Shown in pieces: positions 1 through 26,005 of a stretch of DNA of 64,000 nucleotides. Position 1 is the stretch's first letter; every line of letters starts with the position of its first letter. Under the pieces are notes generated by a model. It was not told where the DNA came from. It worked only from the letters and a program-made list of their open reading frames with translations, and ran no database searches. The stretch comes from Fimbriosthenelais zetlandica (Eukaryota), in contig OZ365113.1 in assembly GCA_977030845.1 (NCBI GenBank), positions 21,700,001-21,764,000 on the forward strand, in the 5' to 3' direction. A program made the translations under genes and the position numbers.

Positions 1-123
1 AATTCGGTCCATAACTTTGTAAACACACCTTTTATAGTAAGGAAGATGCCGTAAATTGCCTAAACGTTTCACTAGCTACTAGACAGAAGATCTCAAGTTG
101 GTTACCTAGACAATATCGCCCCT

Positions 124-124
<1 letters not shown>

Positions 125-155
<31 letters not shown>
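125..155. repeat. C31 homopolymer in GC intron 2 (also at 9868-9898)
   Basis: Direct count, identical length in both copies. Confidence 0.95.
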
Positions 156-156
<1 letters not shown>

Positions 157-289
157 AACACACCACCACATTCGTAAGACCGGTGTTCCCCGAGGAGCTG
201 TACTAGGCCCACTATTAAAATTTGTGACCGTAAAAACATCCATATTATGCCAATTCGTTCTTTCCTATATTGATTCATGCATTATATAG

Positions 290-3200
290 ACATTTGAATG
301 GATGTGGACTGGGGACCCCCAAAAAGATGCCAAGTTGAGGATCGCCTACAGGTCACTGATACATATCACAAAAATACCCTATTTCTTAGGGGAAGCCTAC
401 ACCAACTTTTTAATGGAAGTACGTCAGAGGTTGTTAGAACCACCTTTTAATTCCAACTTATCGTCAATATCAGAGGTAAGTCCAGTTTCTTAAAACCATT
501 AAGTAAACTACAGTACCAACATTAGGCTGGGAGGGGGAAACTAATGCTATTTTAAATTGTTGTCTGGGCTTATAGATATGGCTCGACGTTTCATTGTGTT
601 TTATATGGCCGGGCGTTGCATTGTATTCTATAGGGCTGGGTGTTGCATTGCATTCTATATGGCCGGGCGTTGCATTGTATTCTATAGGGCCGGGCGTTGC
701 ATTGTATTCTATAGGGCCGGGCGTTACACTGTATTCTATAGGGCCGGGCGTTGCATTGTATTCTATAGGGCCGGGCGTTACACTGTATTCTATATGGCCG
801 GGCGTTGCATTGTATTCTATAGGGCCGGGCGTTACACTGTATTCTATAGGGCCGGGCGTTGCATTGTATTCTATAGGGCCGGGCGTTGCATTGTATTCTA
901 TAGGGCCGGGCGTTGCATTGTATTCTATAGGGCCGGGCGTTGCATTGTATTCTATAGGGCCGGGCGTTACATTAAATATTATGATAGGACCATACTCGTG
1001 AGGCAGATGGGTAACCAGATCAACAAAAGCGAGAGTGGATATGGCTTGAAGGGTCTCACGAGACCGTCAGGTAGTAAATCTAAACGTTCCAAATCCGGCC
1101 CACCACGCGTGGTGGCGCCAGCAAAGGACCACACCCCCGGATTAGCCCGACTTTTTACTGATAAACACCAATGTCATGGCATAAATATATATGGCACATC
1201 TTCCATTAGAAACAGGTCCCTGGTAAGCTTGGAACTATTAAAGTTGGGTCTATAATTTTGCATGGTTTTCACAGTAATCAAGCATTATATCTTAAGGCAA
1301 TCGTTTTCATATATATAGGTGAGCCGATCTGCCGGATTTGTGTATGATGCAGTAATTCTATATGCACTGACGGCTGATTTAATGATAAAGCAAGGGATGG
1401 ACCCCACAAATGGGCGAGAGTTCACTAAACAGGCAAAAAATGTGAATTTTCAAGGTGAGAATCCGATATGAATCTTCCATAGCTGGCATGGCTTAAATTA
1501 ATTAACTCATTCATTCATTCATTTGCTCTCCAAAATCTCTACAAATCAGGAACGTGGGCAGCTGAAATATCAGCACTCTCATAATTATTGCTCCGACCTC
1601 TTCCCTTTCCACAATTATATATAACACGACTATCAAAACTGATTACTTACCTTTTTCATAGAAGTCAAGATGAAATATCTTACTCTGGAGCCTGTTTCAG
1701 AAGAAAAAGATAAGTTTCATTAGGCCTATAGCTTAAATGGTATATCTATGAAAATGAAACATTTTATTTTATTTTCATATACTATTTTTTCTTCTATATC
1801 AAAGGTAAAACTGGAGCTGTTAGTGTTAATGAGAATGGTGACAGAAACGACGACTATGCGATATACGACTATCGGGATGGCACATTAAAAAAGGTGGCAT
1901 TTTATGACGGGTTTAAGCACGAGTACATCACTTTGGAAAAGGTTGGTGTTACGAATATTGATTACGAATTTGTCTGTGGAACATTGCTATTAGCATCACT
2001 TAATTGGTATGCAATTTGAATGTTCTTAGTTTATAGATTGTTATTTCCTTTATATATTTACATTTCAGATACTCTGGGGTCGTGATAATGTAGACGAAGT
2101 TCCACGAGACACACCACTGTGTGGTTTCCAGGGAGAGTTATGTGTGGCTGACGAGAAGTGTAAATTTTTAGACATAATTACCAATAAATTCTTATGAACG
2201 TTGAAAGGTTCACAACGAGGGACAGCGTAGCCCTGGAATAAGCTCCTTGTCCCATCTAATATCAACTAATCGGGGGTGTACATTCAGTCGACACATTTAG
2301 GCTGCCACAATCCTGATAGAAGACATTATGTAGGCGATAAAACACTGGGCTGGAGTGTTTTATTGTATTTTCTATCTTTATTTATTAAATTTATACCTGT
2401 TTTATATGAATACAGTAAATCGTATATTTGTCCATATCTCTGCTATGTCGCCAAGTGACCCCATAATTATAATCCTATTATGTGCGCCTGGGACCATTCT
2501 AATTATATGCTTCAAGCCAATTCCACCACCTTGCACTCGATTGACCGACCTTTAGAACTTCTCAATTGTATAGATGCACGCCTCTGTACAGGACCTAGAC
2601 ATTTCTATAACATTTTAGTAATTATAGTAAGTATACCTAAACAAAAACGCACAATCGTGTACTAATGAGTAACAAATGCTATATCGGTTCAGATTTGCAT
2701 ACCTTTCAATATTTTTCATGGTTAATCTGTTACAGCTGACTTGACTGTGATGATAGTAGGGGCTACTCTTGGATTGTTGCTCATATTATTGCTTGGGTTA
2801 GGAATATTCTTCTACAGAAAGAACCAGTTTGAAGCTGAGCTGAGTTCAGCAAATTGGAAGGTTGAGTGGAATGACATCAATTTTAACATCGAAACTGTAA
2901 GTAAGGCTTTGGATACTTTGAATCACCCCAATTCTCAAGTGCTGCAAATTTCCGACCCACAGGCCTTGAGCATACAATGAATGCTGAATGCTTCACTATA
3001 TATATACTAACAATCTCCCAAGTCCGTTCCCCCTACATTTATGTTTACTCCCTTTTTAACCGAAGTTCCCTAAGGCAGTGTATCAGGCTTACTACTTTTT
3101 CTTAATCAGCATAAATAACCCCACTGATTATATTCCAAGTGTTTACCATAAACATAATCAAATCCAAATCTTCGATTTCCAGAGAACCAGGCAATCTGCC

Positions 3201-6200
3201 CTTTCAATTGGTAGCAAAAATAGTCATCAAACCATTGCTTTAGCTTCACCAAACGTGGCAATTTATAAGGTATGGATACAATTTATTTGGTATCTCACTC
3301 ATATATTTCGCTCAAACGCCATAGTGACATGTGTCATATACATTCTGCTTCTACATTCACACGCTTAGAATGAAACTGTTTACGTGAAGAAGATTAACAG
3401 GCCATCTATCGACTGGAAGAAAAGATCAATCCTGCTGGAACTAAAACTGGTGAGATTTTTTAGGTTGTCTACACCAAGATAATAATATTTATAAACTGGA
3501 TTGATTTCATATATTTTTACGGTAATTTCATCCACTGAATTTGATGCTGAAATGGTGAGGAGAGAAAACTCCATTACTTTTTATTAGGCCCATTAAAATT
3601 TGTTTCCCATTGTTACATAAGATACGTGATGCCAGGCATGAGAACCTCAGTTCGTTTATGGGAGCTTGTGTTGAATCTGGCAATATAGCTGTCCTCACTC
3701 GCCACTGTCCCAAAGGAGGCCTGGAAGACTTACTAGAAAATGCTGACATTCAACTAGATTTAATGTTCAGAATTTCTATTGCTATGGACATCATCTCCGT
3801 TAGTATATCATCTGACAGTTCTCGCTCTAAATGAACATATTGACAGCATATAAAATGAATTTAAACTACTTGCAACACCTCAAAAATCATTTAATCAATT
3901 AAGTTGTGATTGCAGGGACTGCGTTATCTTCACAAATCAGATATTAAATTTCATGGGAATTTAAAATCATCAAACTGTCTTGTTGACAGTCGTTGGACGA
4001 TTAAACTAACTGATTTTGGCCTTCATGAGTTCACCAAACCAGATGGGAATACTGAAATTGAAGAGTTTCCGAAATATAAAGGTCAGTTTTGACAGTTACA
4101 TCTAGTTATAACAATGCAACAGCACGATTCGAAATAATCTGTCTTTATCTTTACTAACTCATTACAGCTTTGCTCTGGACAGCTCCTGAGCACCTCCATG
4201 AACCATCACTTGGCTCACTGAAGGGAGATATATTCAGCTTTGGAATAGTGCTACAAGAAATAGCTCTCAGAGCCGGACCATACTCTGAGAATGGCGATCT
4301 TGCACCTAAAGGTAAGGCCACCCAAGTAGCACAAATTTTGGTATTTCTTGATTCGGACTGCTGATTCCAATTAAGTGTGATGGGGGTATTAAGCAGGCCT
4401 ATGGTCCGGTGGATTGTCTGCCTGGATTGTTGGAATCTCTAATCTCTAAAAATGATCCCATTGTTTCAGACATTGTAGATCGAGTGAAGAAAGGATCAGA
4501 CAAACCATTCAGACCGGTCGTACCCAAAGATTCCTGTTCTCCAATCATGCAAGCCCTGATGGCAAAATGTTGGAGTGAGAATCCTTCCCAGAGGCCTGAT
4601 CTTGGTGAAATCATCAGCGATTTAAAACTCCTCAATGGAGGGAAGTATGTCTTTCTCACCTTCATATGTCTATATAGATATTTGTTTGTTATATCTTAAA
4701 CAAATCTAATACAAATTGTCAGAGGCAGTGTCGAATTAAATGAAATAAATCATGAGTCATAATAAATGCATAAGAAAAATATACCCTTCCACACAGGACG
4801 ATAAACATTATGGACAATATGGTGTCCATGCTGGAAAAATATGCCAGCAACCTTGAAGATATTGTTGCCAACAGAACGACACTACTGATGGAAGAAAAGA
4901 AAAAGACTGAGATGCTTCTTCATCAGATGTTACCAAAGTACTAATGTTAACTCAGCACCTCAGACCTTCCTCAGCTAAATATCACTGAACTTCATTCACA
5001 ACTATACATTTAATTTGATAAATAATGAATTTGTCATATCAATCAGATGTGATTTTTACTTTTGATTATCATAGACCTGTTGCTGAGGCTTTGAAAGCTG
5101 GAGAAACAATTGTACCAGAAACGTTTGAAAATGTCACAATATTCTTCTCGGATATTGTTGGCTTTACTTCACTGTCTGCCGAGAGTACACCCATCCAAGT
5201 ACGCAGTTCTTCAAAATAAATTTACTAGCATATAAGTTTACTAGCATATAAATATTTCATTTGGACATTCTAGGCAAAGGTCAATCATGCCGTCAATCAA
5301 TTCCCCCACAGGTTGTCAATCTGCTCAATGATCTCTACACTCTATTTGACTCAATATTGGAGGAGTATGATGTATACAAGGTACAGTACCTGAATCTTAC
5401 ACCAGATTGTCTTGTCCATTTACCTTTAATAAAAGACTATCGTATCATTCTTACTAAATACATGTAATGTTTTTCTCTTAAATTAAACACAGGTGGAGAC
5501 GATAGGTGATGCATATATGGTTGTTTCTGGTTTACCAATAAGGAATGGTGACCAACATGCAGGAGAAATCGCCACAGTTTCTCTCCACCTCCTCTCTAGT
5601 GTACTCTCTTTCAAAATCAGACATCGTCCAGAGATAAAGCTCAAACTGCGAATAGGAATCCACACAGGTAACCGGGGGCAAACTGAATAATAATGCTTAA
5701 TAATGGATATATATGCCCAATCTCATCCCTTATAATCCGACCCTTTCGTGGCTCAACTGAAGTGAATGAAAATAACAACATAAATTATAGTATGTCCAAT
5801 GTGTAAAGGTTCCTTCTTTGATAATGGCAATGTTATGGTAATCACTGAAGCTCATAACAGAGTACTTGTTCTTTCCAACAGGTTCATGTGTTGCAGGTGT
5901 TGTGGGATTAAAAATGCCTCGATATTGTCTCTTCGGGGACACCGTGAACACTGCCTCACGAATGGAATCAAATGGACAAGGTATGTATGGTGATTGTTAT
6001 AATCTAGCCAAACTTCCATTCAAGAAAGGCGTTTTATTATATGCTTTTTATGTTATTTATTCACCAGCTTTGGAGGTTCATGTCAGTGGAATCACACGTG
6101 AACTCTTGCTCAAACTTGGTGGCTACACTCTTGTGGAACGAGGCCAGATAGAAATGAAGGTGACCAGTCTATTATCATTATATTTTCATGTCATCATATT

Positions 6201-6374
6201 GGCCATAGCCATATTAATTCCTTAACAAAATCTTACTGCAAAACAGCATGTTTCTATGTTTAAATAGCTATTATATTAATTATTGGATTGCAGGGCAAAG
6301 GTATTCAGACGACTTATTGGCTTCGAGGAAAGATCAACTTCAACAAACCCCTACCCGAATGGTCCAGCACCTGA
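290..6374 (+). CDS. Receptor (transmembrane) guanylyl cyclase, NPR1/GC-A-like, copy 1; 5'-partial (exons 1-2 lie upstream of the window)
   Basis: Exons read manually with GT-AG boundaries and consistent phases: 290-475, 1319-1454, 1805-1941, 2069-2159, 2736-2896, 3183-3269, 3369-3449, 3622-3798, 3916-4081, 4168-4311, 4470-4644, 4797-4937, 5075-5198, 5312-5380, 5493-5667, 5882-5980, 6068-6159, 6294-6374 (TGA). Motifs: ectodomain [11 protein letters not shown] and NENGDR; juxtamembrane [10 protein letters not shown]; [25 protein letters not shown]; kinase-homology [23 protein letters not shown] and LWTAPE; coiled coil [13 protein letters not shown]...LLHQMLP; cyclase [42 protein letters not shown]. 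The E of KVETIGD and C of RYCLFG are the GTP-specificity residues. Confidence 0.93.
596..975 (+). repeat. 27-bp minisatellite (VNTR) in GC intron 3, about 14 units
   Basis: Unit GGCCGGGCGTTGCATTGTATTCTATAG with variants (ttacactg, tatatgg). It produces the 9-aa periodic ORFs RAGRCIVFY and PGVALYSIG in the track. Confidence 0.97.
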
Positions 6375-7105
6375 ACTCCATCACCTTAATGTTGATAGGC
6401 CTCTCTATATGAGGTGTCACAAATAATTTCAAGAAAAGCTTCACAACTTAGGTTAATGGGCACAATATGACATTGTATTCAGAAAATTATTAATTTTAGT
6501 GTAGGTGAAATTCTCAAACAAGGAAAAGTGGTAGAATAATAAAGTCTAACTCTACCAAATAAAGTTTAGCTGTAAAGTAAGGGAGGTTATCTAGGGTGAT
6601 CTAAGTATTGACAGTTTACGAGGGAAATTGTGTTAATTGTCCATAATTGAGTACCGGTAAATTATGAAATACGTACCTAGATTCATCCCTTTTTGTTTAA
6701 TGTGAAAGACTCTCCGAATATAGATGTTTTGAAGGATAGAGATTAACTACTGTCCCAAAAAATACAATGGGGAAGAAATGTTGATTGTTTGTAAGTAAAA
6801 AGAAATATATATTCATATATATTTTCAATGTCTCACTAAACATTATGAAGCATTCCTTCCCCCTAATCATGTGGATATCCCATTCTGTCAATGACATGTT
6901 CGGAAATAAATGGAATCTGACAGTAAAGTCGTACTCAATGTATGTCTCAATAAAGGAAAACTCTCTTTATAGGTCTGATCTTCATAATTTTGCTGTATCT
7001 GCATCTTTTGTTATAGCATCCATCACAGCTTTTAGAGTAACCCATATTAAAGTTTCATGACTCATTCATTTTCTGGGCGCTAGGTAGCAGTAGATATGCT
7101 CACTA
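6165..7105 (+). repeat. Diverged paralogous 3' end (last intron, last exon, 3' flank) homologous to 16016-17350
   Basis: Alignable by eye with many substitutions and indels (e.g. gttaatgggcacaatatgacattgtattcag, ctagggtgatctaagt, cctagattcatccctttt, ttttctgggcgctaggtagca). The last exons differ at 6 of 81 nt. Confidence 0.92.
6538..6563 (+). promoter_or_regulatory. Candidate polyadenylation signals (two AATAAA) of GC copy 1
   Basis: AATAAA at 6538-6543 and 6558-6563, about 165-190 nt after the stop codon. Confidence 0.5.
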
Positions 7106-7830
7106 TTCCACCCTTCTAAACTATACTTGCCCATCAGCTGACAGTAGTACTTTGTTGGCGACCAACCAAGGTGATGATTTGGGATAATTACAGGCAGGAG
7201 ATATCCTTCAATGAGATTATGGTATAATAATCTTCGGTTTCTTTGGTACTCATAACTATGGTTCCGATTTTTATACGAGCTTCACGATTGTTTACTCACG
7301 ATTGATATTGATATTTTGTATGTTCACGTAAGGGGCTTTATGTAATCTTCCCATCGTAAGGGCTCATACGGGTGAATCGGGACCTTCCGATCGTAAGTGG
7401 ATTACACGCTTTGACTCTGACTATCTTCGCCTATGTGACAAGATTTTAATTCAGTTTCATGTCATTAATGCATCATTCATGACATCTGGGTCATGAGCAA
7501 ATACTAATGCAAATACTACACGAGACGTATGGGACCAACTAATGACAGTGATGCTCTGTTTACTGTCAAACAATTATTGAGAAAACCTGGTTGATATGAA
7601 TCGCTATTTTTTCGATGCCATGTAATTTTGCATCGCAATTTCTCTTCTGCCACATACCCGCAATATAAATGTGAATATGACATTAAAACAAGTCTGAATT
7701 TGCTACCCCACCTCTCATTTCACATAACTAGACGGAGATAAAATTCACTTTTATTTTTCACTTGGCTAAAATTAGGCCTACATTTCCAAGGATCTGTTTC
7801 GATCTTCCTGGAAGCTTTTGTTCACAAAAA

Positions 7831-8314
7831 GGGATTACAATTCTCATCTGTCGCCTGATACCTTTCATTCTCCCTGTCAAAGGTGGACAGCACCCCAAGT
7901 TCAAAGTAAGGACTGCCTTATTAAATGCGGTGAGAAGTTACACTTCAAAGTAGCATGTCGTGTTAGCTGATATGTTAGGTGTAATTTTCTGAACATAACA
8001 ACTCTTATCCCCTTATCATGTGCTTTCCTAGAGACCTTGGTAGGAGTTCAGTAACACTTTGGTCCACAGTTGGGTCCACTGGTTTCACCTGTAAAAATGA
8101 TACTTTGAACACCACCTTCAAAGACACAGTTCACTATTAACTGATTAATTACATGGCCCGAAGAAAGTGTGTTAAATAAACACACTGCCTTTCAGTACAG
8201 AACAACCTTTTACTGGGATTACAATTTTCATTTGCTGCCATTTGCTGCCTGATACCTTTCATTCTCTATATCAAAGGTGGACAAAACCCCAAGTTCAAAG
8301 TAAGGACTGCCTTA
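7831..8314 (+). repeat. Pair of ~90-100 bp direct repeats (7831-7920 and 8215-8314) upstream of GC copy 2
   Basis: gggattacaatt(c/t)tcat...cctgatacctttcattctc...tcaaaggtggaca...ccccaagttcaaagtaaggactgcctta occurs twice. The second copy has an internal 10-nt duplication (tttgctgcca). Confidence 0.9.
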
Positions 8315-8629
8315 AATGAAGTTTGTCATGAAGTACATTGTATAAAGAAAGTTTGTTATATAAATACTGAGCTAGAAGATAAAGAAATCTATAATGGGCT
8401 AATGTAATCCAACTCAATATGAAAACTCTGTCCTAGAAGATATGTTTTATATTAGCTATTATAGGAATCGCATCACATTAGCCTGCCGCTGCTGGAAAGT
8501 CCCAAAGAACGTTCCCAGAACTTCGTGAGCATGCGCAATGTAGTGCTGAGGAGATGCTCACTGGTTGAAAGAGTAGGTCTGAAGTGGGCAACCTTTTTTA
8601 GTATGCTCTGGGCCACCAACAAGGGCAAA

Positions 8630-9866
8630 ATGGGCCCTTGTCGGGAAGTCAGATTTCAGATTCTGGTCTGGCTGATAATATGCCCTCAACGTCTTGAGGC
8701 CAATAAGGAGCTACTCATGAGTTTTTCAGCTATGAGTGACAATGTCTTCTCTGGTCCACCGGGCAAACATTATGGAGAGTTGGGTTCGGCAGTACCAATG
8801 GCTATAGAAGCTATTAAAAACGAACCAAATATCCTTCCAAACCACACATTGAATTATTTCCTCACACCGACGGATTGTTCAGAAAAGAAGGCCCTGGCTA
8901 CACTAGCCGATATCCGGAATAATGTGAGTGTTGTCATTGGACCAGCATGTTCCTCAGCTATCAGAGGGGTAGGACTCCTTGCGTCTTACTGGAACATCCC
9001 TGTCGTTGGCTATTTTGGTACAGGTGCAATTTTATCAAATAAGTTAGTTTACGATACATTTGTCAGGGTGGTTTCACCTGGTGATAGGACTTCTGAAATC
9101 ATGTTGGTCATTCTGAAGAAATTTGGTTGGAAGAGAGCTGGTCTTCACAAGATGGGACGTTATGGCCCTCCATCTCATACCTATACTGGATTGTTGGCTA
9201 AAAAACCAGAGAACTTCACTTACGTTGATCCTTACTTCGGGAACACCAATGATTGGAATTATCTGAGACGAGCCTCATTATTAAAAATAAGTGCAGAGTC
9301 AAGGGGTAAGACAATCTTTGAATAGTCATATTTTCCTCCCATCAAAGATGGCAACACCAGAGGCCCGTATCAAAAGAATCTTATACACAATGTTAAGTTT
9401 ATGGACTAATAAAACATTAGGAAACAGCTAGCCGCAAGTCAATGACTCCTAACAATTAGGGACTCATGATTTCATAAATTAAAATTATATATATATATAT
9501 ATATATTATATTTTCTATTTTCCAGTCATATTACTGCTAGCCAACACATTTGAACTGCCTAACACCATGCTTACAGCTTATGATCTAGGACTATGTAATT
9601 CAAACGAATATGTATTTATATCTATGGACGCGGAAGGTTCCGAGGTAGGAAAGTTATTTCGTGAGCCTTAAATACCATCTGCATGAAGACAATTTCTCCA
9701 ATTCCAACTTTTTTTCTTTACAATATTTTGCATTTCCTAATTGAATTCGGTCCATAACTTTGTAAACACACCTTTTATAGTAAGGAAGATGCCGTAAATT
9801 GCCTAAACGTTTCACTAGCTACTAGACAGAAGATCTCAAGTTGGTTACCTAGACAATATCGCCCCT

Positions 9867-9899
<33 letters not shown>

Positions 9900-12800
9900 A
9901 ACACACCACCACATTCGTAAGACCGGTGTTCCCCGAGGAGCTGTACTAGGCCCACTATTAAAATTTGTGACCGTAAAAACATCCATATTATGCCAATTCG
10001 TTCTTTCCTATATTGATTCATGCATTATATAGACATTTGAATGGATGTGGACTGGGGACCCCCAAAAAGATGCCAAGTTGAGGATCGCCTACAGGTCACT
10101 GATACATATCACAAAAATACCCTATTTCTTAGGGGAAGCCTACACCAACTTTTTAATGGAAGTACGTCAGAGGTTGTTAGAACCACCTTTTAATTCCAAC
10201 TTATCGTCAATATCAGAGGTAAGTCCAGTTTCTTAAAACCATTAAGTAAACTACAGTACCAACATTAGGCTGGGAGGGGGAAACTAATGCTATTTTAAAT
10301 TGTTGTCTGGGCTTATAGATATGGCTCGACGTTTCATTGTGTTTTATATGGCCGGGCGTTGCATTGTATTCTATAGGGCTGGGTGTTGCATTGCATTCTA
10401 TATGGCCGGGCGTTGCATTGTATTCTATAGGGCCGGGCGTTGCATTGTATTCTATAGGGCCGGGCGTTACACTGTATTCTATAGGGCCGGGCGTTGCATT
10501 GTATTCTATAGGGCCGGGCGTTGCATTGTATTCTATAGGGCCGGGCGTTGCATTGTATTCTATAGGGCCGGGCGTTGCATTGTATTCTATAGGGCCGGGC
10601 GTTACACTGTATTCTATAGGGCCGGGCGTTGCATTGTATTCTATAGGGCCGGGCGTTGCATTGTATTCTATAGGGCCGGGCGTTACACTGTATTCTATAG
10701 GGCCGGGCGTTGCATTGTATTCTATAGGGCCGGGCGTTGCATTGTATTCTATAGGGCCGGGCGTTGCATTGTATTCTATAGGGCCGGGCGTTGCATTGTA
10801 TTCTATAGGGCCGGGCGTTACATTAAATATTATGATAGGACCATACTCGTGAGGCAGATGGGTAACCAGATCAACAAAAGCGAGAGTGGATATGGCTTGA
10901 AGGGTCTCACGAGACCGTCAGGTAGTAAATCTAAACGTTCCAAATCCGGCCCACCACGCGTGGTGGCGCCAGCAAAGGACCACACCCCCGGATTAGCCCG
11001 ACTTTTTACTGATAAACACCAATGTCATGGCATAAATATATATGGCACATCTTCCATTAGAAACAGGTCCCTGGTAAGCTTGGAACTATTAAAGTTGGGT
11101 CTATAATTTTGCATGGTTTTCACAGTAATCAAGCATTATATCTTAAGGCAATCGTTTTCATATATATAGGTGAGCCGATCTGCCGGATTTGTGTATGATG
11201 CAGTAATTCTATATGCACTGACGGCTGATTTAATGATAAAGCAAGGGATGGACCCCACAAATGGGCGAGAGTTCACTAAACAGGCAAAAAATGTGAATTT
11301 TCAAGGTGAGAATCCGATATGAATCTTCCATAGCTGGCATGGCTTAAATTAATTAACTCATTCATTCATTCATTTGCTCTCCAAAATCTCTACAAATCAG
11401 GAACGTGGGCAGCTGAAATATCAGCACTCTCATAATTATTGCTCCGACCTCTTCCCTTTCCACAATTATATATAACACGACTATCAAAACTGATTACTTA
11501 CCTTTTTCATAGAAGTCAAGATGAAATATCTTACTCTGGAGCCTGTTTCAGAAGAAAAAGATAAGTTTCATTAGGCCTATAGCTTAAATGGTATATCTAT
11601 GAAAATGAAACATTTTATTTTATTTTCATATACTATTTTTTCTTCTATATCAAAGGTAAAACTGGAGCTGTTAGTGTTAATGAGAATGGTGACAGAAACG
11701 ACGACTATGCGATATACGACTATCGGGATGGCACATTAAAAAAGGTGGCATTTTATGACGGGTTTAAGCACGAGTACATCACTTTGGAAAAGGTTGGTGT
11801 TACGAATATTGATTACGAATTTGTCTGTGGAACATTGCTATTAGCATCACTTAATTGGTATGCAATTTGAATGTTCTTAGTTTATAGATTGTTATTTCCT
11901 TTATATATTTACATTTCAGATACTCTGGGGTCGTGATAATGTAGACGAAGTTCCACGAGACACACCACTGTGTGGTTTCCAGGGAGAGTTATGTGTGGCT
12001 GACGAGAAGTGTAAATTTTTAGACATAATTACCAATAAATTCTTATGAACGTTGAAAGGTTCACAACGAGGGACAGCGTAGCCCTGGAATAAGCTCCTTG
12101 TCCCATCTAATATCAACTAATCGGGGGTGTACATTCAGTCGACACATTTAGGCTGCCACAATCCTGATAGAAGACATTATGTAGGCGATAAAACACTGGG
12201 CTGGAGTGTTTTATTGTATTTTCTATCTTTATTTATTAAATTTATACCTGTTTTATATGAATACAGTAAATCGTATATTTGTCCATATCTCTGCTATGTC
12301 GCCAAGTGACCCCATAATTATAATCCTATTATGTGCGCCTGGGACCATTCTAATTATATGCTTCAAGCCAATTCCACCACCTTGCACTCGATTGACCGAC
12401 CTTTAGAACTTCTCAATTGTATAGATGCACGCCTCTGTACAGGACCTAGACATTTCTATAACATTTTAGTAATTATAGTAAGTATACCTAAACAAAAACG
12501 CACAATCGTGTACTAATGAGTAACAAATGCTATATCGGTTCAGATTTGCATACCTTTCAATATTTTTCATGGTTAATCTGTTACAGCTGACTTGACTGTG
12601 ATGATAGTAGGGGCTACTCTTGGATTGTTGCTCATATTATTGCTTGGGTTAGGAATATTCTTCTACAGAAAGAACCAGTTTGAAGCTGAGCTGAGTTCAG
12701 CAAATTGGAAGGTTGAGTGGAATGACATCAATTTTAACATCGAAACTGTAAGTAAGGCTTTGGATACTTTGAATCACCCCAATTCTCAAGTGCTGCAAAT

Positions 12801-15800
12801 TTCCGACCCACAGGCCTTGAGCATACAATGAATGCTGAATGCTTCACTATATATATACTAACAATCTCCCAAGTCCGTTCCCCCTACATTTATGTTTACT
12901 CCCTTTTTAACCGAAGTTCCCTAAGGCAGTGTATCAGGCTTACTACTTTTTCTTAATCAGCATAAATAACCCCACTGATTATATTCCAAGTGTTTACCAT
13001 AAACATAATCAAATCCAAATCTTCGATTTCCAGAGAACCAGGCAATCTGCCCTTTCAATTGGTAGCAAAAATAGTCATCAAACCATTGCTTTAGCTTCAC
13101 CAAACGTGGCAATTTATAAGGTATGGATACAATTTATTTGGTATCTCACTCATATATTTCGCTCAAACGCCATAGTGACATGTGTCATATACATTCTGCT
13201 TCTACATTCACACGCTTAGAATGAAACTGTTTACGTGAAGAAGATTAACAGGCCATCTATCGACTGGAAGAAAAGATCAATCCTGCTGGAACTAAAACTG
13301 GTGAGATTTTTTAGGTTGTCTACACCAAGATAATAATATTTATAAACTGGATTGATTTCATATATTTTTACGGTAATTTCATCCACTGAATTTGATGCTG
13401 AAATGGTGAGGAGAGAAAACTCCATTACTTTTTATTAGGCCCATTAAAATTTGTTTCCCATTGTTACATAAGATACGTGATGCCAGGCATGAGAACCTCA
13501 GTTCGTTTATGGGAGCTTGTGTTGAATCTGGCAATATAGCTGTCCTCACTCGCCACTGTCCCAAAGGAGGCCTGGAAGACTTACTAGAAAATGCTGACAT
13601 TCAACTAGATTTAATGTTCAGAATTTCTATTGCTATGGACATCATCTCCGTTAGTATATCATCTGACAGTTCTCGCTCTAAATGAACATATTGACAGCAT
13701 ATAAAATGAATTTAAACTACTTGCAACACCTCAAAAATCATTTAATCAATTAAGTTGTGATTGCAGGGACTGCGTTATCTTCACAAATCAGATATTAAAT
13801 TTCATGGGAATTTAAAATCATCAAACTGTCTTGTTGACAGTCGTTGGACGATTAAACTAACTGATTTTGGCCTTCATGAGTTCACCAAACCAGATGGGAA
13901 TACTGAAATTGAAGAGTTTCCGAAATATAAAGGTCAGTTTTGACAGTTACATCTAGTTATAACAATGCAACAGCACGATTCGAAATAATCTGTCTTTATC
14001 TTTACTAACTCATTACAGCTTTGCTCTGGACAGCTCCTGAGCACCTCCATGAACCATCACTTGGCTCACTGAAGGGAGATATATTCAGCTTTGGAATAGT
14101 GCTACAAGAAATAGCTCTCAGAGCCGGACCATACTCTGAGAATGGCGATCTTGCACCTAAAGGTAAGGCCACCCAAGTAGCACAAATTTTGGTATTTCTT
14201 GATTCGGACTGCTGATTCCAATTAAGTGTGATGGGGGTATTAAGCAGGCCTATGGTCCGGTGGATTGTCTGCCTGGATTGTTGGAATCTCTAATCTCTAA
14301 AAATGATCCCATTGTTTCAGACATTGTAGATCGAGTGAAGAAAGGATCAGACAAACCATTCAGACCGGTCGTACCCAAAGATTCCTGTTCTCCAATCATG
14401 CAAGCCCTGATGGCAAAATGTTGGAGTGAGAATCCTTCCCAGAGGCCTGATCTTGGTGAAATCATCAGCGATTTAAAACTCCTCAATGGAGGGAAGTATG
14501 TCTTTCTCACCTTCATATGTCTATATAGATATTTGTTTGTTATATCTTAAACAAATCTAATACAAATTGTCAGAGGCAGTGTCGAATTAAATGAAATAAA
14601 TCATGAGTCATAATAAATGCATAAGAAAAATATACCCTTCCACACAGGACGATAAACATTATGGACAATATGGTGTCCATGCTGGAAAAATATGCCAGCA
14701 ACCTTGAAGATATTGTTGCCAACAGAACGACACTACTGATGGAAGAAAAGAAAAAGACTGAGATGCTTCTTCATCAGATGTTACCAAAGTACTAATGTTA
14801 ACTCAGCACCTCAGACCTTCCTCAGCTAAATATCACTGAACTTCATTCACAACTATACATTTAATTTGATAAATAATGAATTTGTCATATCAATCAGATG
14901 TGATTTTTACTTTTGATTATCATAGACCTGTTGCTGAGGCTTTGAAAGCTGGAGAAACAATTGTACCAGAAACGTTTGAAAATGTCACAATATTCTTCTC
15001 GGATATTGTTGGCTTTACTTCACTGTCTGCCGAGAGTACACCCATCCAAGTACGCAGTTCTTCAAAATAAATTTACTAGCATATAAGTTTACTAGCATAT
15101 AAATATTTCATTTGGACATTCTAGGCAAAGGTCAATCATGCCGTCAATCAATTCCCCCACAGGTTGTCAATCTGCTCAATGATCTCTACACTCTATTTGA
15201 CTCAATATTGGAGGAGTATGATGTATACAAGGTACAGTACCTGAATCTTACACCAGATTGTCTTGTCCATTTACCTTTAATAAAAGACTATCGTATCATT
15301 CTTACTAAATACATGTAATGTTTTTCTCTTAAATTAAACACAGGTGGAGACGATAGGTGATGCATATATGGTTGTTTCTGGTTTACCAATAAGGAATGGT
15401 GACCAACATGCAGGAGAAATCGCCACAGTTTCTCTCCACCTCCTCTCTAGTGTACTCTCTTTCAAAATCAGACATCGTCCAGAGATAAAGCTCAAACTGC
15501 GAATAGGAATCCACACAGGTAACCGGGGGCAAACTGAATAATAATGCTTAATAATGGATATATATGCCCAATCTCATCCCTTATAATCCGACCCTTTCGT
15601 GGCTCAACTGAAGTGAATGAAAATAACAACATAAATTATAGTATGTCCAATGTGTAAAGGTTCCTTCTTTGATAATGGCAATGTTATGGTAATCACTGAA
15701 GCTCATAACAGAGTACTTGTTCTTTCCAACAGGTTCATGTGTTGCAGGTGTTGTGGGATTAAAAATGCCTCGATATTGTCTCTTCGGGGACACCGTGAAC

Positions 15801-16205
15801 ACTGCCTCACGAATGGAATCAAATGGACAAGGTATGTATGGTGATTGTTATAATCTAGCCAAACTTCCATTCAAGAAAGGCGTTTTATTATATGCTTTTT
15901 ATGTTATTTATTCACCAGCTTTGGAGGTTCATGTCAGTGGAATCACACGTGAACTCTTGCTCAAACTTGGTGGCTACACTCTTGTGGAACGAGGCCAGAT
16001 AGAAATGAAGGTGACGAGTCTATTATCATTATATTTTTATAAAAATGTATATATCTTCATTTTGGCCATTTCCAAATTAATTCCTTAACATGATCTTACT
16101 GCAAAACAACATGTTGAATTGCAGGGGAAAGGTAAACAGACGACTTATTGGCTTCGTGGAAAGATCAACTTCGACAAACCCCTACCCGAATGGTCCAGCG
16201 CCTGA
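8630..16205 (+). CDS. Receptor (transmembrane) guanylyl cyclase, NPR1/GC-A-like, copy 2; complete, 20 coding exons, 1038 aa
   Basis: Exons: 8630-9305, 9526-9644, 10033-10218, 11170-11305, 11656-11792, 11920-12010, 12587-12747, 13034-13120, 13220-13300, 13473-13649, 13767-13932, 14019-14162, 14321-14495, 14648-14788, 14926-15049, 15163-15231, 15344-15518, 15733-15831, 15919-16010, 16125-16205. They sum to 3117 nt in frame. The ATG at 8630 (ggcaaaATGg) begins a signal-peptide-like [24 protein letters not shown]; in-frame ATGs further upstream (e.g. 8531) make the start somewhat uncertain. Exon 1 has ANF-receptor motifs [51 protein letters not shown]. Downstream domains as in copy 1. Confidence 0.93.
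9744..16015 (+). repeat. Segmental tandem duplication, unit B (near-identical to 1-6164)
   Basis: As for unit A. The 108-nt length difference equals four extra 27-bp VNTR units. Confidence 0.97.
10339..10826 (+). repeat. 27-bp minisatellite (VNTR) in GC intron 3 of copy 2, about 18 units
   Basis: Same unit as 596-975, with four more copies and a different order of variant units. Confidence 0.97.
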
Positions 16206-16639
16206 TCACTTTAATATTTATATGAGGTGTGACAAATATTATTAGTATTATTTCAAGAAAGTTAATGGGCACAATATGACATTGTATTCAGGAATATATT
16301 TAGTGTACACATGTGGTATTGGTAGAATGATATAGAATAACTTGAACAAATACAATTTAGATGTGCAGCAAGGGAGGTTTTCTAGGGTGATCTAAGTGTT
16401 GAAGGTTTACCAGGCAAATTGTATCAATTGTCCATAACTGAGTAAATTATGAAATACCTAGATTCATCCCTTTTTTCCCGTCTCCGAGTATAGATGTTTT
16501 GAAGGATAGAGATTAATAACTGCCCACAATATACAACGGGGAAGAAATGTTGATTGTTTTAAGTAAAAGGAAATATATATATAATTATATTCAAGTATAT
16601 ATCTGTCTACTAAACATTATGAAGCATTCCTTCCCCCTA

Positions 16640-17146
16640 TAGTCAGGAAGCAGAATCAGAAAAGAGGCCTAGAAATGGAAATCGCTAAACATTTTGAGTA
16701 GAGATTGCCAACAAGTACTAACATGGAGTATATGGGCTGGGCTTTCTGAAAATGCTTGTTGGCATCTGTAATGGGGAAATATGTTACTGAAAAATAAGCG
16801 ATTTTAGGCCCATTCTTAGGTTTGACCTTGGCCCAGATGACCTTGACCTCCATAAAAGGTCAAATGCCCTATATAGAAATTTTGCATATCGTCTCTAGTC
16901 AATGGGTCCCAAATTTGAAGATCCTGCCTAAAATAGCTACAGAGATATGCAAACCTAAGTAAAATCACTTTGGATTTTTCAGATTTTATGTATGTTGCCA
17001 TGGTAACCACCCAAAATATCGAATGCCAGAATGCCAACAAGCATTTTCAGAAAGCCCAGCCCATATACTCCATGTTAGTACTTGTTGGCAATCTCTACTC
17101 AAAATGTTTAGCGAAAGTCGATTTTTGAGATTCTGCTTCCTGACTA
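16640..17146. mobile_element. Non-autonomous DNA transposon (MITE), 507 bp, TAG...CTA termini, 3-bp TSD (CTA); Academ-like assignment tentative
   Basis: Outer TIR TAGTCAGGAAGCAGAATC (16640) / GATTCTGCTTCCTGACTA (ends 17146). Perfect 84-bp subterminal inverted repeat 16682-16765 / 17031-17114. CTA is duplicated at 16637-16639 and 17147-17149. The empty site ttcccc-cta-atcatgtggatatcc is present in copy 1 (about 6858-6880). Confidence 0.92.
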
Positions 17147-20100
17147 CTAATCATGTGGATATCCTATTCTGTCAATGAAATGTTCGGAAACACATGGAAT
17201 CTGATCGTAATATCATCTTCAATATGTCTCAATAAAGGAAAACTCTCTTTATTGATTTTATATTCATAATTTTGGTGTATCTGCATTTTCTTTTATAGCT
17301 TTTAGACTCATTTATTTTCTGGGCGCTAGGTAGCAATAGGTCTGCTCACAGTCACAATTCTACCCACAAATGATGCCCCTGGCCTGGCGCACTACTTAAA
17401 GCAGGGCACTACACTTGGTCCCAACTTAAAACTCTTATGTGGCGGTAGCTGAAACGCTTAGGCCTACCATGGGTATGTACTTTCTCCCAAGGTCTTATTG
17501 CAGGGAATAAGGGATGATGAATCTGCCTAACAAATCAGGAATGGATTTCTGGATGATTTTGGTGCTTTCCTAGGCCTAAAATCATGTAAAATGCTGAGCG
17601 ATGCCCCAGGACTAGTCTGGTCAGGGATAGTCGATATTCCTTGGTCTGGCTATGATACAGTTCAGCCACCTAGTGTTTACCTTGTGCATCGAGAGTGAAC
17701 TGAGCTCCGCCTAGCCTGTAAACAAGCCTCGTCCTCTCTACACCGGGACAGATACTCCGTCTAAGCTCCGCCGCGCCTTTACCTCAGCGGTAAACCACCA
17801 GGTGCCAGCTCTGTCGCCACCATCAGCTGAGTGCCAAAGGCCAAGCCGGTTAATGCCGGCGTCGCTAGGAATTTTCAGACGTCGTTTGTAGATCTATTAA
17901 AGCACCTAAATCAGCCAGAATTGAAATCAGTTGGTACATTTACATGGAAAATCTATTTCATCCAAAAGAACAGAGCTACGCTGCATGTAAACCTGTGAAC
18001 GGTGAGAGAAATTAGAAGTGAGCGATAATAGGAGTTTTGGCAGATCCCGGCCCGAACGAGCATTGACCGTCAAGTGGCTCCCTCGCCACCTATCCGGCAA
18101 ACGAAGGAACTAAGATAAGAGAACTTTCTGCCCCATGTGACTACCCCACCACCGGCAAACGCGGGAACTAATGCTCAATGCTAAGTGAATGGTAGCCATT
18201 GATATAGCATTTAGCGTTAGTTCCCCCTCTTGCCGTATAGCTGCGCAAGGGTGCAACCCCTATCATCGCTCACAACACTGCTTCCATTCAGTTTATGAAT
18301 AACACAATATGATTCATAATGAAGCAGTAGAAATTAAGTTGTTAAAATGTTTAGACAGTTCACCGATTGACATTCAACCCTAAAGTTAAAGTTCGAGAGA
18401 AAATAGGAGGCAAAGAACATGAGAAGGCTCACCGTACCGAGCGATAATAGGGGTAGAAAAGAGATTTTCGTGTTTGAAGACCTCTAAAATTTTCCACGAG
18501 TGCGACATGTGGCTGAAACTTTGGTAAATCACAGAGGACACCTACCTCATTATGTGGTATGAATATGACAAACATGTCGCGTTTCCTCTCATGACAGGGA
18601 CAGGTTCAATCTTCGGGAAGGGAAGGCAGGCGGTGGTGTCTAGCCTACATAATGGGCGTGTTCCTTTTGCTGTTACAGTTAGATTAGGCCTACTAGCTGT
18701 TACATTAGGCCTATACTACTTGAAAGGTCCATACGAAATATGTAGGCCTACATATTGCTCGTCACTCCATTTTCTAACCATAGGCTAGATCTAGTAAGGT
18801 AAAAACAGTGCCCTTGGTTTCAGCCTACAGGTCTGTTACTTTCTAAGGCAATTAGTGATTTTGTAAGGAGTGGTATTCATTGTCGATACATGCCCTGGGG
18901 AAAAGAGCTCTCCATCCATCGATGGAAATAGTTTTACGGTCAAATTGATGTGAGTTGCTGTGGAAAATTGAGCCTATTCAGAGAGCGCTGGGCATATTAT
19001 AGTCCCAGACGACTTTTTACACTCCAGCAGGCGATAATTTGTCAAGAAGTTGAAAGGAGGTGTTGGGTAAGAATCAAGGAGTAATTTGTGGCAAGCTGCC
19101 AAGAGTTAGACCATGGGGACCTGTAGACTATAAGAACTATATAGGGGCCTAAGTCTAATATGTCACTGCTGAACACATTGGACTTCTGAATTTCTAATTA
19201 TTTCTAATGCACGAACAGATGATAGAAGTATTCCCATCTGACACATTCATATGTCACTAAATTGTAACAATCTACTGAACTGCAACTAACTGACACTCAT
19301 GAGATCTCATGACAGCAGTCCAGAGAGCCAGTATTGTCCATTGTCTGAGTTAGACTTGAAACCAAGTACTTATAAGAGATTTCATTATTTTGTATTAGTG
19401 AAAATAACACACTTTCTTGTATCATGGGAATGACATGCAGATTTACCACTGCCTATGTTATGGCCTTGAATTGACTCTGATGCTGATTAAGACTAATCTT
19501 TGATGTCTACTACCCTTCCACAACTTCCTGGTAAGACCATCCAGCCAATCTGGTGGCAGAAAATGAGCAGAGGTCGATAGTTGATGAAGAGGAGCATCGC
19601 CTAACGGGGAGTAATGTTGACACATCAAACACAATCACGACCGGCAGGATATCTCAGCGCGGAAGAAAGTAGTTCCTGTGCACGTCTTGATGAAACACAT
19701 GCCTTATTTTGTGGCACATCTTTTCCCAAAGAAAACAATCAGGAGACTGTCACCAGAATGGATCTTATGTCTCACTGATTGCTGTATTCCAAACAAAAAT
19801 CTTCAGCAGCCAATAGGGAAGTACGATCTCCATTTCCGCCGAGTCATTATTAAGCAATTGAAAGGGTGCTGTCCCAACAAATAATGCCTGTAGTGCAATA
19901 TTGGATTGATTTCTCACCTTATGTGGGACTGTAACACATCCCATCAGCTAAGATTACGCTGTGTCTTATGCTTTGACTCGGATAGATGTACATGTATATA
20001 GGTTGGTGAAATAGCATTTGGATCACATCTGTACCCTCTATCTGGATCTACCTTTAGGGGGTTTTCCACCCATCTCTATTTTGGTATGAAAGTTAGATAA

Positions 20101-24004: not shown

Positions 24005-26005
24005 TCACGTCGAGCAGCTGATATGCTCTTGGTTAAATGGGCCTTGTACATTATCATTTATAATGCACCGTACCCAGATATTGTAGCTTGTCTCTGGTTT
24101 GAGTCCCATGGAGAATTGGTGGGCGGTTTTGCTCAGCAGCCAAGCCGTATAGTTCTCTTGCCCAGACTCCTGAATCCACACCTCATAATGAACATTGCGC
24201 ACCTGAAGGTACTTCAAGTTCCAGGGGGGTTGCCATGACAACCAGAGGCTTGGTGGTGTGAAGGCATTTTCGTTGTGAACCGAGTCCCTGTCTTGGTTAC
24301 CCTCACACCGAAGACTCTGTACTGGAGAAGGGAATATTCTCTTATAGAGAAGAACATCTGTGGGGTCAGGAGGGGGTGAGGGCAAGCTGCCCCCGGAGAC
24401 ATTGAACTGCTTGTCCCTTTGTTGAATGGCACCTTGTATAAGAGTTATGACGGAGGGAATATCTACCATGGTGTCCTGGTAAATGCGGTAGAACCATTCA
24501 GGGTCCCTGCAACACAGGTGTTTTGGCACCTCCGTACTAGAGGAGATAATGTCCTGCACCTCCTGGGAGAGGTGGGCTATTCCTCCAGTGTCCCAAGGTC
24601 GTGTGGGGTGAGTCACGGTGTTCTTAACATTCATGTTCCTCCAGGCGCGGTAGATGAGTCCCATCCCCTGGAGATTGGACAGGGTTTTGTATGGGGTGTA
24701 GTTGTTGGGATTTACTGCATAAGGAAATAGTTCAATTAGAATGGCACTCGGTGGTAAGAACATGGCTAGGGACAATAAAGATCCATGCATACCAATAAGG
24801 ATGGAAGCTTTGCTTAGAATTGCCATCATCTCAGCAACGGAGTGGGTCTCCACCCCTACACTAAGCACTTTAGTCTTGAGCTCTCTCACGAGAGCTAAAG
24901 TCAATTCAACTTCATTAATAATCAGTCTGTTGTGCTTCCGAGTAAACAACACTATATAGCTTTCCCCATTGGGAACCGTGAGGTAATCAGTTCCCAGACG
25001 TGATTTTAAGAAGGATGTGAACTGTTTGACCTCACGTCCAGTTATTTGAGAATTAGCAATGGGTCCTTGTGGCTCTCTAAATCCATATTGATACCACGTG
25101 GTGGCTTTACTGATCCCTACATAGGAGTCTTTGAAGCAAATAACAGAGTCTTTGTTCTGTATGTCACTTTTGAATAAAGGTCTATACGAGCTGAATGCTT
25201 CATATAAATTAATGAAGTCACCGGGACTCCAGCCCTCCATAAATACTAACTGTACATCGAAGGCGGAGACATTAGATTTGTGTCCTCCAGTAATCATATG
25301 GAGAGTGTAATACATGGGAAGCAGGTCGTCATGGATGACGTGCATGAGATTATCTGGGTTGAACCGACGGAAAAGCAAACTGGTGGGATCGATAAACTCT
25401 ACCTTGAAACTTTCAGCCTTGGTAGCTGGGAGGTCAACAAAGTTGAAATACTGCATATTGTGGTCCCATACTGAAGACATGTCCAGCAACGTGGGGTTAA
25501 ACCTGTCCAAAGTCAAGCCGGACATGATGCTCTGCGGGCTGTGGAAAAAAACAAAGTCATCCGATGTAGGCATGTAGCACAGGTTGCGAAAGCGACATAT
25601 TCGGTCTGTATGTCGCTCACCCCAACACCAAACAGATGAGCCTTGCTGAGCAAGCCTGGTTACATTGCCATCTCCAAGCAGGTGTTCCTCTTCGGAGGTA
25701 CTAAAGGAGTTGGCGATGTCAATGGTAGGTGTAATCTGGTGTAGGTTCACTTCCAGCGTGTGTGTGGTGACCTGGGGTTGTTGTTGGCCGTTACCTTCCA
25801 AATTATTATTATTGTTGGATTCGGCTGCAACACCAACATGGTTATTACAGGCTCGGGTTGTGGGCAGTCCCCCATCACCTGCCTCAGGGACGCCCGCTGT
25901 GAAATTTTGGAACTCAACATATTTGGTGAGGAGGACTGCGATGGTCACAGTGGAGATGACGTGAAGCCATCCATGAAAGCCCAGCATGATTACATGGGAA
26001 GTCAT
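24005..26005 (-). CDS. POMGNT2: Protein O-linked-mannose beta-1,4-N-acetylglucosaminyltransferase 2 (GT61 family, type II membrane, C-terminal fibronectin type III domain); single coding exon
   Basis: 666-aa ORF. N-terminal TM VISTVTIAVLLTKYV. GT61 motifs DRICRFRNLCY, RRFNPDNLMHVIHDDLLP, TTWYQYGF, RLIINE, LIGMHGSLL, IELFPYAVNP, CCRDPEWFYRIYQDT. FN3 tail LSWQPPWNLKYLQVRNVHYEVWIQE...YNIWVRC distinguishes it from EOGT. A strong acceptor (ttttcctttgcag, ends 26021) lies 15 nt upstream, matching the 5'UTR-intron plus single-coding-exon layout known for vertebrate POMGNT2. The true start may be the ATG at 25987, which has a better Kozak context. Confidence 0.95.
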   Translation of the reverse strand: MTSHVIMLGFHGWLHVISTVTIAVLLTKYVEFQNFTAGVPEAGDGGLPTTRACNNHVGVAAESNNNNNLEGNGQQQPQVTTHTLEVNLHQITPTIDIANSFSTSEEEHLLGDGNVTRLAQQGSSVWCWGERHTDRICRFRNLCYMPTSDDFVFFHSPQSIMSGLTLDRFNPTLLDMSSVWDHNMQYFNFVDLPATKAESFKVEFIDPTSLLFRRFNPDNLMHVIHDDLLPMYYTLHMITGGHKSNVSAFDVQLVFMEGWSPGDFINLYEAFSSYRPLFKSDIQNKDSVICFKDSYVGISKATTWYQYGFREPQGPIANSQITGREVKQFTSFLKSRLGTDYLTVPNGESYIVLFTRKHNRLIINEVELTLALVRELKTKVLSVGVETHSVAEMMAILSKASILIGMHGSLLSLAMFLPPSAILIELFPYAVNPNNYTPYKTLSNLQGMGLIYRAWRNMNVKNTVTHPTRPWDTGGIAHLSQEVQDIISSSTEVPKHLCCRDPEWFYRIYQDTMVDIPSVITLIQGAIQQRDKQFNVSGGSLPSPPPDPTDVLLYKRIFPSPVQSLRCEGNQDRDSVHNENAFTPPSLWLSWQPPWNLKYLQVRNVHYEVWIQESGQENYTAWLLSKTAHQFSMGLKPETSYNIWVRCIINDNVQGPFNQEHISCST

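Follow-up and report, generated by a model that had tools for sequence, protein, structure and literature searches.

A tandem array of predicted receptor guanylyl cyclase genes in Fimbriosthenelais zetlandica, with a hybrid member probably produced by a recent unequal crossover

The 64,000-nucleotide stretch of Fimbriosthenelais zetlandica DNA analysed here (the window; contig OZ365113.1, positions 21,700,001 to 21,764,000, positions of 0 and below lying upstream of its first letter) opens inside a tandem array of three predicted receptor guanylyl cyclase genes, A - H - B, on the + strand. The question raised by this locus is how its middle gene, H, came to combine the body of one neighbour with the 3' end of the other. 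The array contains a 9,743-bp segment, C19:21696422-21706164 (window -3578 to 6164), followed head-to-tail by a second copy at 6165-16015. The two units, 9,743 and 9,851 bp long, show a single substitution over 9,318 bases outside a 27-bp intronic minisatellite, in which they also differ. Their layout is as follows.

1-6164, + strand: in-window part of the first unit, with exons 3-19 of H; 100% identical to 9744-16015 outside the minisatellite.
6165-9743, + strand: A-derived 3' part of H, spacer and exons 1-2 of B, repeated at -3578 to 0; it comprises the remainder of intron 19 (6165-6293), exon 20 (6294-6374), the 3' flank and A-B spacer (6375-8629), and B exons 1-2.
7160, + strand: sole substitution between the units, G here and A at -2583.
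16016-17299, + strand: 3' end of B proper (last intron, last exon and 3' flank); it matches the A/H version at 77-87% identity and is set apart from it by large indels.

Self-BLAST of the window and pairwise alignment give no difference between 1-575 and 9744-10318, nor between 1001-6164 and 10852-16015 (5,164 bp). An earlier note on this DNA had delimited the repeat as 1-6164 and 9744-16015; the identity outside the minisatellite holds, but the true unit is larger, running from -3578 to 6164 and from 6165 to 16015. The note had also let H start inside the window, whereas exons 1 and 2 of the gene sit upstream at -1113 to -99. Its two predictions on the upstream sequence were borne out. The segment 6165-9743 recurs directly before base 1, where 3,578 of its 3,579 bases are those of C19:21696422-21700000, and this repeat is preceded by a diverged paralogue, gene A, which ends GKGIQ...SST*. 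Between -40 kb and +64 kb there are no family members besides A, H and B, and no N bases or contig breaks, unit borders included. Elsewhere in the genome, which carries at least 172 cyclase-exon matches, some of them as tandem pairs, no additional copy or close paralogue of the A/H/B subfamily was found, nor any alternative haplotig for the locus.

Gene models were obtained by spliced alignment to three homologues followed by refinement. Weak donors for exons 5 and 7 were dropped in favour of AAG|GTTGG and ACT|GTAAGT, which are conserved in A and H.

290-6374, + strand: hybrid gene H, exons 3-20 (exons 1-2 upstream at -1113 to -438 and -217 to -99).
H exons 3-8: 290-475, 1319-1454, 1805-1941, 2069-2159, 2736-2896, 3183-3269.
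H exons 9-14: 3369-3449, 3622-3798, 3916-4081, 4168-4311, 4470-4644, 4797-4937.
H exons 15-20: 5075-5198, 5312-5380, 5493-5667, 5882-5980, 6068-6159, 6294-6374 (stop included).
8630-16205, + strand: gene B, 20 exons, with the last intron at 16011-16124 and the last exon at 16125-16205; its exons are offset from those of H by +9743 as far as 575 and by +9851 beyond the minisatellite.

H has a 3,117-nt coding sequence of 1,038 codons for amino acids, distributed over 20 exons, with GT-AG borders at every intron and no internal stop. B is likewise intact and 1,038 amino acids long; its coding sequence departs from that of H by 6 nt and 3 amino acids, in exon 20 only. Pfam assigns to H the domains ANF_receptor, PK_Tyr_Ser-Thr and Guanylate_cyc. 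The ANF_receptor match (PF01094, E 6e-28) falls in the exon 1 ORF at 8465-9322, with a weak second match in exon 4. In exon 7, as read by eye, about 23 hydrophobic residues precede basic ones, a candidate for the single transmembrane helix between ectodomain and kinase-homology domain; a Pfam TM_ErbB1 match is below cut-off. The kinase-homology domain (PF07714 matches in exons 10 and 13) carries HGNLKSSN in place of HRDLK and, read against GC-A, thus lacks the catalytic Asp of HRD. In class III cyclases Asp residues bind the metal and a Glu/Cys pair selects GTP; PF00211 matches exons 17-18, and the corresponding motifs, of 17 and 18 residues, are present. H and B are predicted to be membrane guanylyl cyclases of the kind represented by the natriuretic peptide receptors.

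A three-way alignment shows where H changes from one parental type to the other. H agrees with B at each of the 635 alignable A/B-differing sites left of 6054 and, starting at 6165, with A at each of 94, with no discordant site. The last position where H equals B and not A is 6054, and the first where it equals A and not B is 6165.

6055-6164, + strand: crossover interval, a 110-bp tract in which A, H and B do not differ and across which the markers switch.

The interval takes in exon 19 (6068-6159) together with 13 nt at the end of intron 18 and 5 nt at the start of intron 19. The H junction within it is seamless, without a base gained or missing, and the junction-specific pattern of B-type then A-type sites matches the window once; metagenome contigs yielded no match to it, a blank that carries no weight. 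As the earlier note had seen, H/B identity ends abruptly 5 nt past the donor of the penultimate exon: the donor GT occupies 6160-6161 and the first difference (C versus G) is found at 6165/16016, intron position +6, after which come a 12-bp indel and closely spaced substitutions. Six B-type diagnostic sites lie within 150 bp of the H junction and about 90 within 1.1 kb; A can be told from H and B at 6017, 6023, 6028, 6029, 6031 and 6054. The same note had placed the exchange in the last intron. The crossover structure is upheld, but this position is too precise: since the identical tract is made up of exon 19 with a few bases on either side, the exchange can be placed anywhere in 6055-6164 and exon 19 is equally possible.

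Beyond the junction, window self-BLAST aligns 6283-6865 to 16114-16639 with 77% identity and 6863-7017 to 17147-17299 with 86%. The last exons, 6294-6374 in H and 16125-16205 in B, each read as 26 residues. Relative to A and H, the sequence at 16016-17299 is old paralogous DNA, in agreement with the earlier reading of last intron, last exon and flank as old and diverged.

Gene A lies upstream of the first unit, on the same strand as B and one repeat period apart from it, and resembles H and B in patches, at 84-99% identity in one comparison and 79-99% in another; it shares with H an identical last exon. It has an apparent +1 frameshift in exon 1, where a run of seven A stands at about -9570, and, besides this, one GC donor, while two further apparent defects vanish once the refined donors for exons 5 and 7 are used. 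The A-B identity profile, from a MAFFT alignment, is patchy: blocks at 95-99% are set in sequence at 80-89%, and the two genes diverge by about 10-13% where they can be aligned. A block of about 2.7 kb is 95-99% alike and has the 110-bp tract at its 3' edge, identity falling sharply at the new crossover site. A second tandem pair, on C21, displays a similar profile.

The patchwork suggests that gene conversion acts at the locus, and the array could in principle be the work of conversion itself: in an older three-gene array, long tracts would have overwritten the middle gene and both spacers, B serving as donor for its 5' side and A for its 3' side, or conversion would have copied one 9.7-kb unit onto the other. 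The matching pattern in the C21 pair is in line with this explanation, which we nevertheless regard as very unlikely. It demands that a single tract run unbroken for about 9.7 kb across intergenic DNA or, alternatively, that two tracts abut in the same 110 bp with no older site left among 9,318 bases. It also leads one to expect a diverged upstream spacer, in place of which there is a single mismatch in 3,579 bp; the earlier note had named this comparison as the one to separate the two mechanisms, and the near-identity favours crossover.

We privilege instead a recent unequal crossover (non-allelic homologous recombination, NAHR) of the anti-Lepore type as the probable origin of A - H - B. Its substrate would be the direct tandem paralogues A and B with their 2.7 kb at 95-99% identity, and the duplicated segment begins and finishes at homologous A/B positions. 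An older tandem pair A and B, on sister chromatids or homologues, would have misaligned by one repeat period, and the crossover would have been resolved within the 110-bp A/B-identical tract of the cyclase domain. The duplication-bearing product would be A - H - B, in which the upstream region of H is spacer-derived, like that of B, its exons 1-19 come from B, and A supplies the last intron, exon 20, the 3' UTR and the spacer that follows. The upstream repeat, the presence of paralogue A and the exception-free marker switch agree with this model, which the earlier note had proposed as A, B5'/A3' hybrid, B. A replication-based tandem duplication by template switching (MMBIR/FoSTeS type), using the paralogous identity as homology, would leave the same seamless head-to-tail duplication. 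We hold it to be highly improbable, given that 110 bp of perfect identity in about 2.7 kb of 95-99% homology is a substrate for homologous recombination and far exceeds the few bases typical of template switching, and that the junction bears no templated insertion.

The event would be very young, and probably recent in generations: the units are separated by 1 substitution in 9.3 kb, whereas A and B diverge by about 10-13%. The repeats of the two units bear on this point and on the integrity of the assembly.

587-973, + strand: 27-bp minisatellite in intron 3 of H, 14.3 units.
10330-10824, + strand: 27-bp minisatellite in intron 3 of B, 18.3 units; the internal order of unit variants differs from H.
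125-155, + strand: poly-C(31) in H, intron 2, of equal length in B at 9868-9898.

The 27-bp minisatellite is absent in paralogue A. The difference between H and B is not a single 108-bp indel, the best one-gap alignment leaving 3 mismatches and the order of units being different; at least 2-3 mutational steps are required. The equal poly-C runs, despite the fast mutation of such sequences, fit an extremely recent event. They fit equally an assembler that reused the same reads or normalised the run, and in this respect count against the crossover.

The animal might indeed carry A - spacer - B, with the loop from the 3' end of A through the spacer to the 5' part of B walked once too often, or with two haplotypes stitched in tandem. 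The near-identity of the units, poly-C(31) length included, is what such an artefact would yield, and allelic variation could account for both the single SNP and the minisatellite difference. We consider it unlikely all the same. H joins B-type to A-type sequence across just 110 identical bases, where an overlap assembler needs real reads; the middle part of A is not collapsed with that of B and stays 95% distinct; and the unit borders are without gap or N. Reads used twice would give matching minisatellites, while those of H and B differ: being several steps apart, and with one SNP between the units, the copies are not a single sequence written twice. Two haplotypes with 1 SNP in 9.3 kb would, for their part, imply unusually low heterozygosity. 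The duplication is probably present in the animal as well as in the assembly, and the real number of units could differ from the two assembled copies.

H retains the ligand-binding, kinase-homology and catalytic domains of B, so the immediate effect would be an extra dose of B with 3 altered C-terminal residues and the 3' UTR of A. The chimera announced by the earlier note is borne out by the assembled structure, B at the 5' side and A at the 3' side, but the change in the protein is small. The locus is a very clean case of well-known gene-family growth, and neither a new mechanism nor a new kind of gene. Its value is that of a base-resolved snapshot of a receptor family gaining a member, in which parents, product and the 110-bp exchange tract are all readable ahead of blurring by later mutation or conversion. 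The 6 diagnostic bases of exon 20, which tell B from A and H, and the junction haplotype provide practical markers for copy-number variation among individuals; A and H can be told apart in exons 1-18. A broader reading would combine a segregating copy-number variant, an invariant cyclase exon as recurrent exchange point, and a general engine of receptor-cyclase expansion in this lineage. Taken jointly these are doubtful; the A-B identity drop at the crossover and the profile of the C21 pair fit this reading without demonstrating it. Were the joint reading true, conversion would keep the catalytic halves of tandem genes alike while their ectodomains diverge, and the homogenised catalytic block would seed new copies again and again.

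Among known proteins, H and B share with GC-A/NPR1 the order ANF_receptor, putative transmembrane segment, kinase-homology domain and cyclase, and over NPR1 residues 887-946 their cyclase exon has about 73% identity; their ectodomain, in contrast, reaches only 30-47% identity with any entry of the protein library. As to the mechanism, a close parallel is haemoglobin anti-Lepore (and Lepore), hybrid globin genes that result from unequal crossover between the tandem delta- and beta-globin genes. As proposed for A and B, the tandem paralogues there misalign and cross over in a stretch of identity inside the gene; the duplication product has both parental genes with an in-frame hybrid between them. 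The gene family is another one, the exchange in H lies near the 3' end, the hybrid differs from one parent by 3 residues, and the array is known from one assembly. The human red/green opsin array and the CYP21A2/CYP21A1P module also change copy number and form hybrid genes by NAHR. They resemble A - H - B as tandem arrays with high-identity blocks that conversion keeps alike, or may keep alike in the case of A - H - B, and CYP21A1P in addition as a defective partner, a role that A with its apparent exon 1 frameshift may play here; they are polymorphic in populations, whereas A - H - B comes from a single assembly. Expansion by unequal crossing over has also been inferred for the tandem arrays of ant odorant receptors, from array architecture and transposon density (PMC6211649). 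These too form a large receptor family in tandem arrays, with unequal crossing over as the mechanism of expansion, whereas in the present array one probable event of this kind is resolved to an exchange interval of 110 bp.

Three receptor guanylyl cyclase genes lie in tandem on the plus strand in the order A - H - B, and the middle one, H, is a hybrid almost identical to one parent. BLAST of the window against itself pairs 1-6252 with 9744-16115. Base-by-base comparison finds no difference between 1-575 and 9744-10318, nor over the 5,164 bp of 1001-6164 and 10852-16015; between these identical stretches a 27-bp minisatellite counts 14.3 units (587-973) in one copy and 18.3 (10330-10824) in the other. 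The order of its unit variants places the copies more than one step apart, the best single 108-bp gap still leaving 3 mismatches. Identity ends at 6165/16016 with a 12-bp indel and dense substitutions, beyond which similarity drops to 77-86% and reaches 7017/17299. The sharp near-identical match, VNTR aside, and the diverged paralogous sequence past its break, both reported in the earlier note, are thus borne out. A poly-C of exactly 31 is found in intron 2 of both H (125-155) and B (9868-9898), a surprising equality for so mutable a tract; TRF found no comparable run in the 10 kb of gene A.

The window is C19:21700001-21764000. A search of the whole assembly (a 447-Mb animal genome in 79 sequences) with 6165-9743 finds this stretch again at C19:21696422-21700000, immediately upstream of base 1 as had been predicted, with 1 mismatch in 3,579 bp (G at 7160, A at -2583, negative positions being upstream of the window). 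The true repeat therefore comprises two head-to-tail units differing by 1 substitution in 9,318 non-minisatellite bases:

-3578 to 6164: unit 1, 9,743 bp
6165 to 16015: unit 2, 9,851 bp

Comparison of the 40 kb upstream of the window with the unit locates the third gene, A, upstream of this second copy. It is the further paralog foreseen there, 79-99% like the unit in the parts left of 6165:

5' flank and exon 1 region: 79-85% identity of gene A to the unit
ectodomain and juxtamembrane exons: 84-95%
unit positions 3573-5219: 95%
5299-6164: 98.9%
6165 onward: 100%

Gene models were built by spliced alignment to three full-length homologues, two donors being refined by A-H conservation. H and B have 20 exons each, all introns GT-AG, and a CDS of 3,117 nt (1,038 codons without internal stop). 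Features on the plus strand are:

8465-9322: ANF_receptor (Pfam), open frame of 286 codons
3559-3831 and 4352-4696: PK_Tyr_Ser-Thr (Pfam)
5487-5687 and 5842-6222: Guanylate_cyc (Pfam)
6068-6159: exon 19 of H, donor 6160-6161
6160-6293: last intron of H
6294-6374: exon 20 of H

The cyclase exon aligns with residues 887-946 of human NPR1/GC-A (E 4e-21). The kinase-homology domain carries HGNLKSSN and the cyclase domain [17 protein letters not shown] and [18 protein letters not shown]; these are signature motifs of receptor guanylyl cyclases, with roles that we presume from established knowledge of GC-A. The coding sequences of H and B are 6 nucleotides and 3 residues apart, all in exon 20 (I1016K, N1029D, T1038A); their ligand-binding, kinase-homology and catalytic domains are identical and their upstream region is common over at least 2.2 kb. 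H likely provides extra dosage of B, plus the C-terminal tail variants and 3' UTR of A. In the protein library, the closest relatives found for the exon 1 ectodomain (P0001, P0003, P0004 and P0007) include predicted proteins 2,500-3,900 aa long, each matching in 6-10 separate places; these are probably tandem receptor arrays of other genomes fused in a single gene model.

When A, H and B are aligned together, the informative sites as far as 6054 all group H with B, and those from 6165 on all group H with A: over the whole alignable length, 635 substitution sites to the left and 94 to the right, with 0 discordant. The exchange falls within the 110 bp of 6055-6164, identical in the three genes, and the junction is seamless. 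Since exon 19 occupies 6068-6159, this interval covers that exon entirely, together with the final 13 nt of intron 18 and the first 5 nt of intron 19. The start of the last intron, previously taken as the breakpoint, stands as the right-hand limit of the interval; the exchange itself may lie anywhere in it.

The simplest history suggested by these sequences would be a single unequal crossover, and the earlier reading to that effect holds, with the upstream copy present and the informative sites switching once without exception. Starting from A - spacer - B, a single non-allelic homologous crossover, in which B of one chromatid recombined with A of the other, would yield A - spacer - H - spacer - B. 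Gene conversion instead of crossover would require a 9.7-kb tract across intergenic DNA, or two tracts abutting in the same 110 bp. The outcome of template switching would look alike, but its usual homology is a few bases, against a 2.7-kb homologous block here. Nothing in the sequence requires an assembly artefact, which is unlikely, and several features tell against one: B-type is joined to A-type sequence across only 110 identical bases, there is no N or gap, the body of gene A stays uncollapsed with that of B, and minisatellites and one SNP set the units apart. The equal poly-C length speaks slightly for an artefact.

The units diverge by ~1.1e-4 per site and alignable A and B sequence by ~0.10-0.13, so the crossover would be younger, by a factor of about a thousand, than those parts of A and B that escaped homogenisation. 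Assuming 1e-9 to 1e-8 mutations per site and generation, we infer an age of ~5,000-50,000 generations from one difference, with a very wide Poisson error.

In exon 1 of gene A, a run of A is one base longer than in H and B (7 rather than 6; ~-9570, C19:21690430), which shifts the reading frame and ends it at codon 202. Exon 3 of gene A has a GC donor, and exons 3-20 are otherwise in frame. Against B these exons give dS 0.074, dN 0.016 and dN/dS 0.215; this ratio and the kept frame indicate constraint on gene A during most of its past. Two readings fit: a very young pseudogene, or a homopolymer error made in the assembly.

A-B identity along the genes is a patchwork:

promoter vicinity and beginning of exon 1: 95-97%
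most of the ectodomain region: 78-89%
B 13400-14800: 96-99%
15146-16015: 95-97%
after 16016: 82-93%, large gaps

Because the high-identity blocks take in introns, the pattern looks like past gene conversion between A and B. The last such block ends, on its 3' side, at the new crossover. Proximal upstream sequence and the start of exon 1 (8448-8847 against -10314 to -9929) show 95-97.5% identity, with 50-89% on either side; this is either a conserved stretch of promoter and signal peptide or a short tract of conversion. On C21, another tandem pair of receptor cyclase genes (~24701800-24707300 and ~24709900-24715500, within C21:24692001-24732000) has a profile of the same kind: its 5' half is 84-90% identical, the cyclase exons and their introns 96.5-97%, and the downstream sequence ~80-83%. 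This likeness suggests that the catalytic half undergoes conversion in tandem pairs.

The genome holds at least 172 cyclase-exon matches, several as tandem pairs. Genome search restricts the A/H/B subfamily to this locus, other family members matching only in the most conserved cyclase exon (at most 83% identity), and no further member was found from -40 kb to +64 kb. The A-B spacer contains a short interspersed repeat of ~120 bp (7597-7748), with dozens of copies on many chromosomes at 82-95% identity and no tRNA-like part found, and two copies of a 76-bp direct repeat (7845-7920 and 8239-8314; 89% identity, 394 bp apart). On the minus strand, an open reading frame of 666 codons runs without interruption over 24005-26005; it encodes a Glycosyltransferase 61 domain and, at the C-terminus, a fibronectin type III domain.

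The layout A - H - B matches the globin cluster's anti-Lepore configuration, and hybrid opsin and CYP21 genes are made by the same process of unequal crossover. Growth of receptor arrays is generally attributed to it (e.g. PMC6211649). A - H - B is a new and unusually clean instance of this known process.
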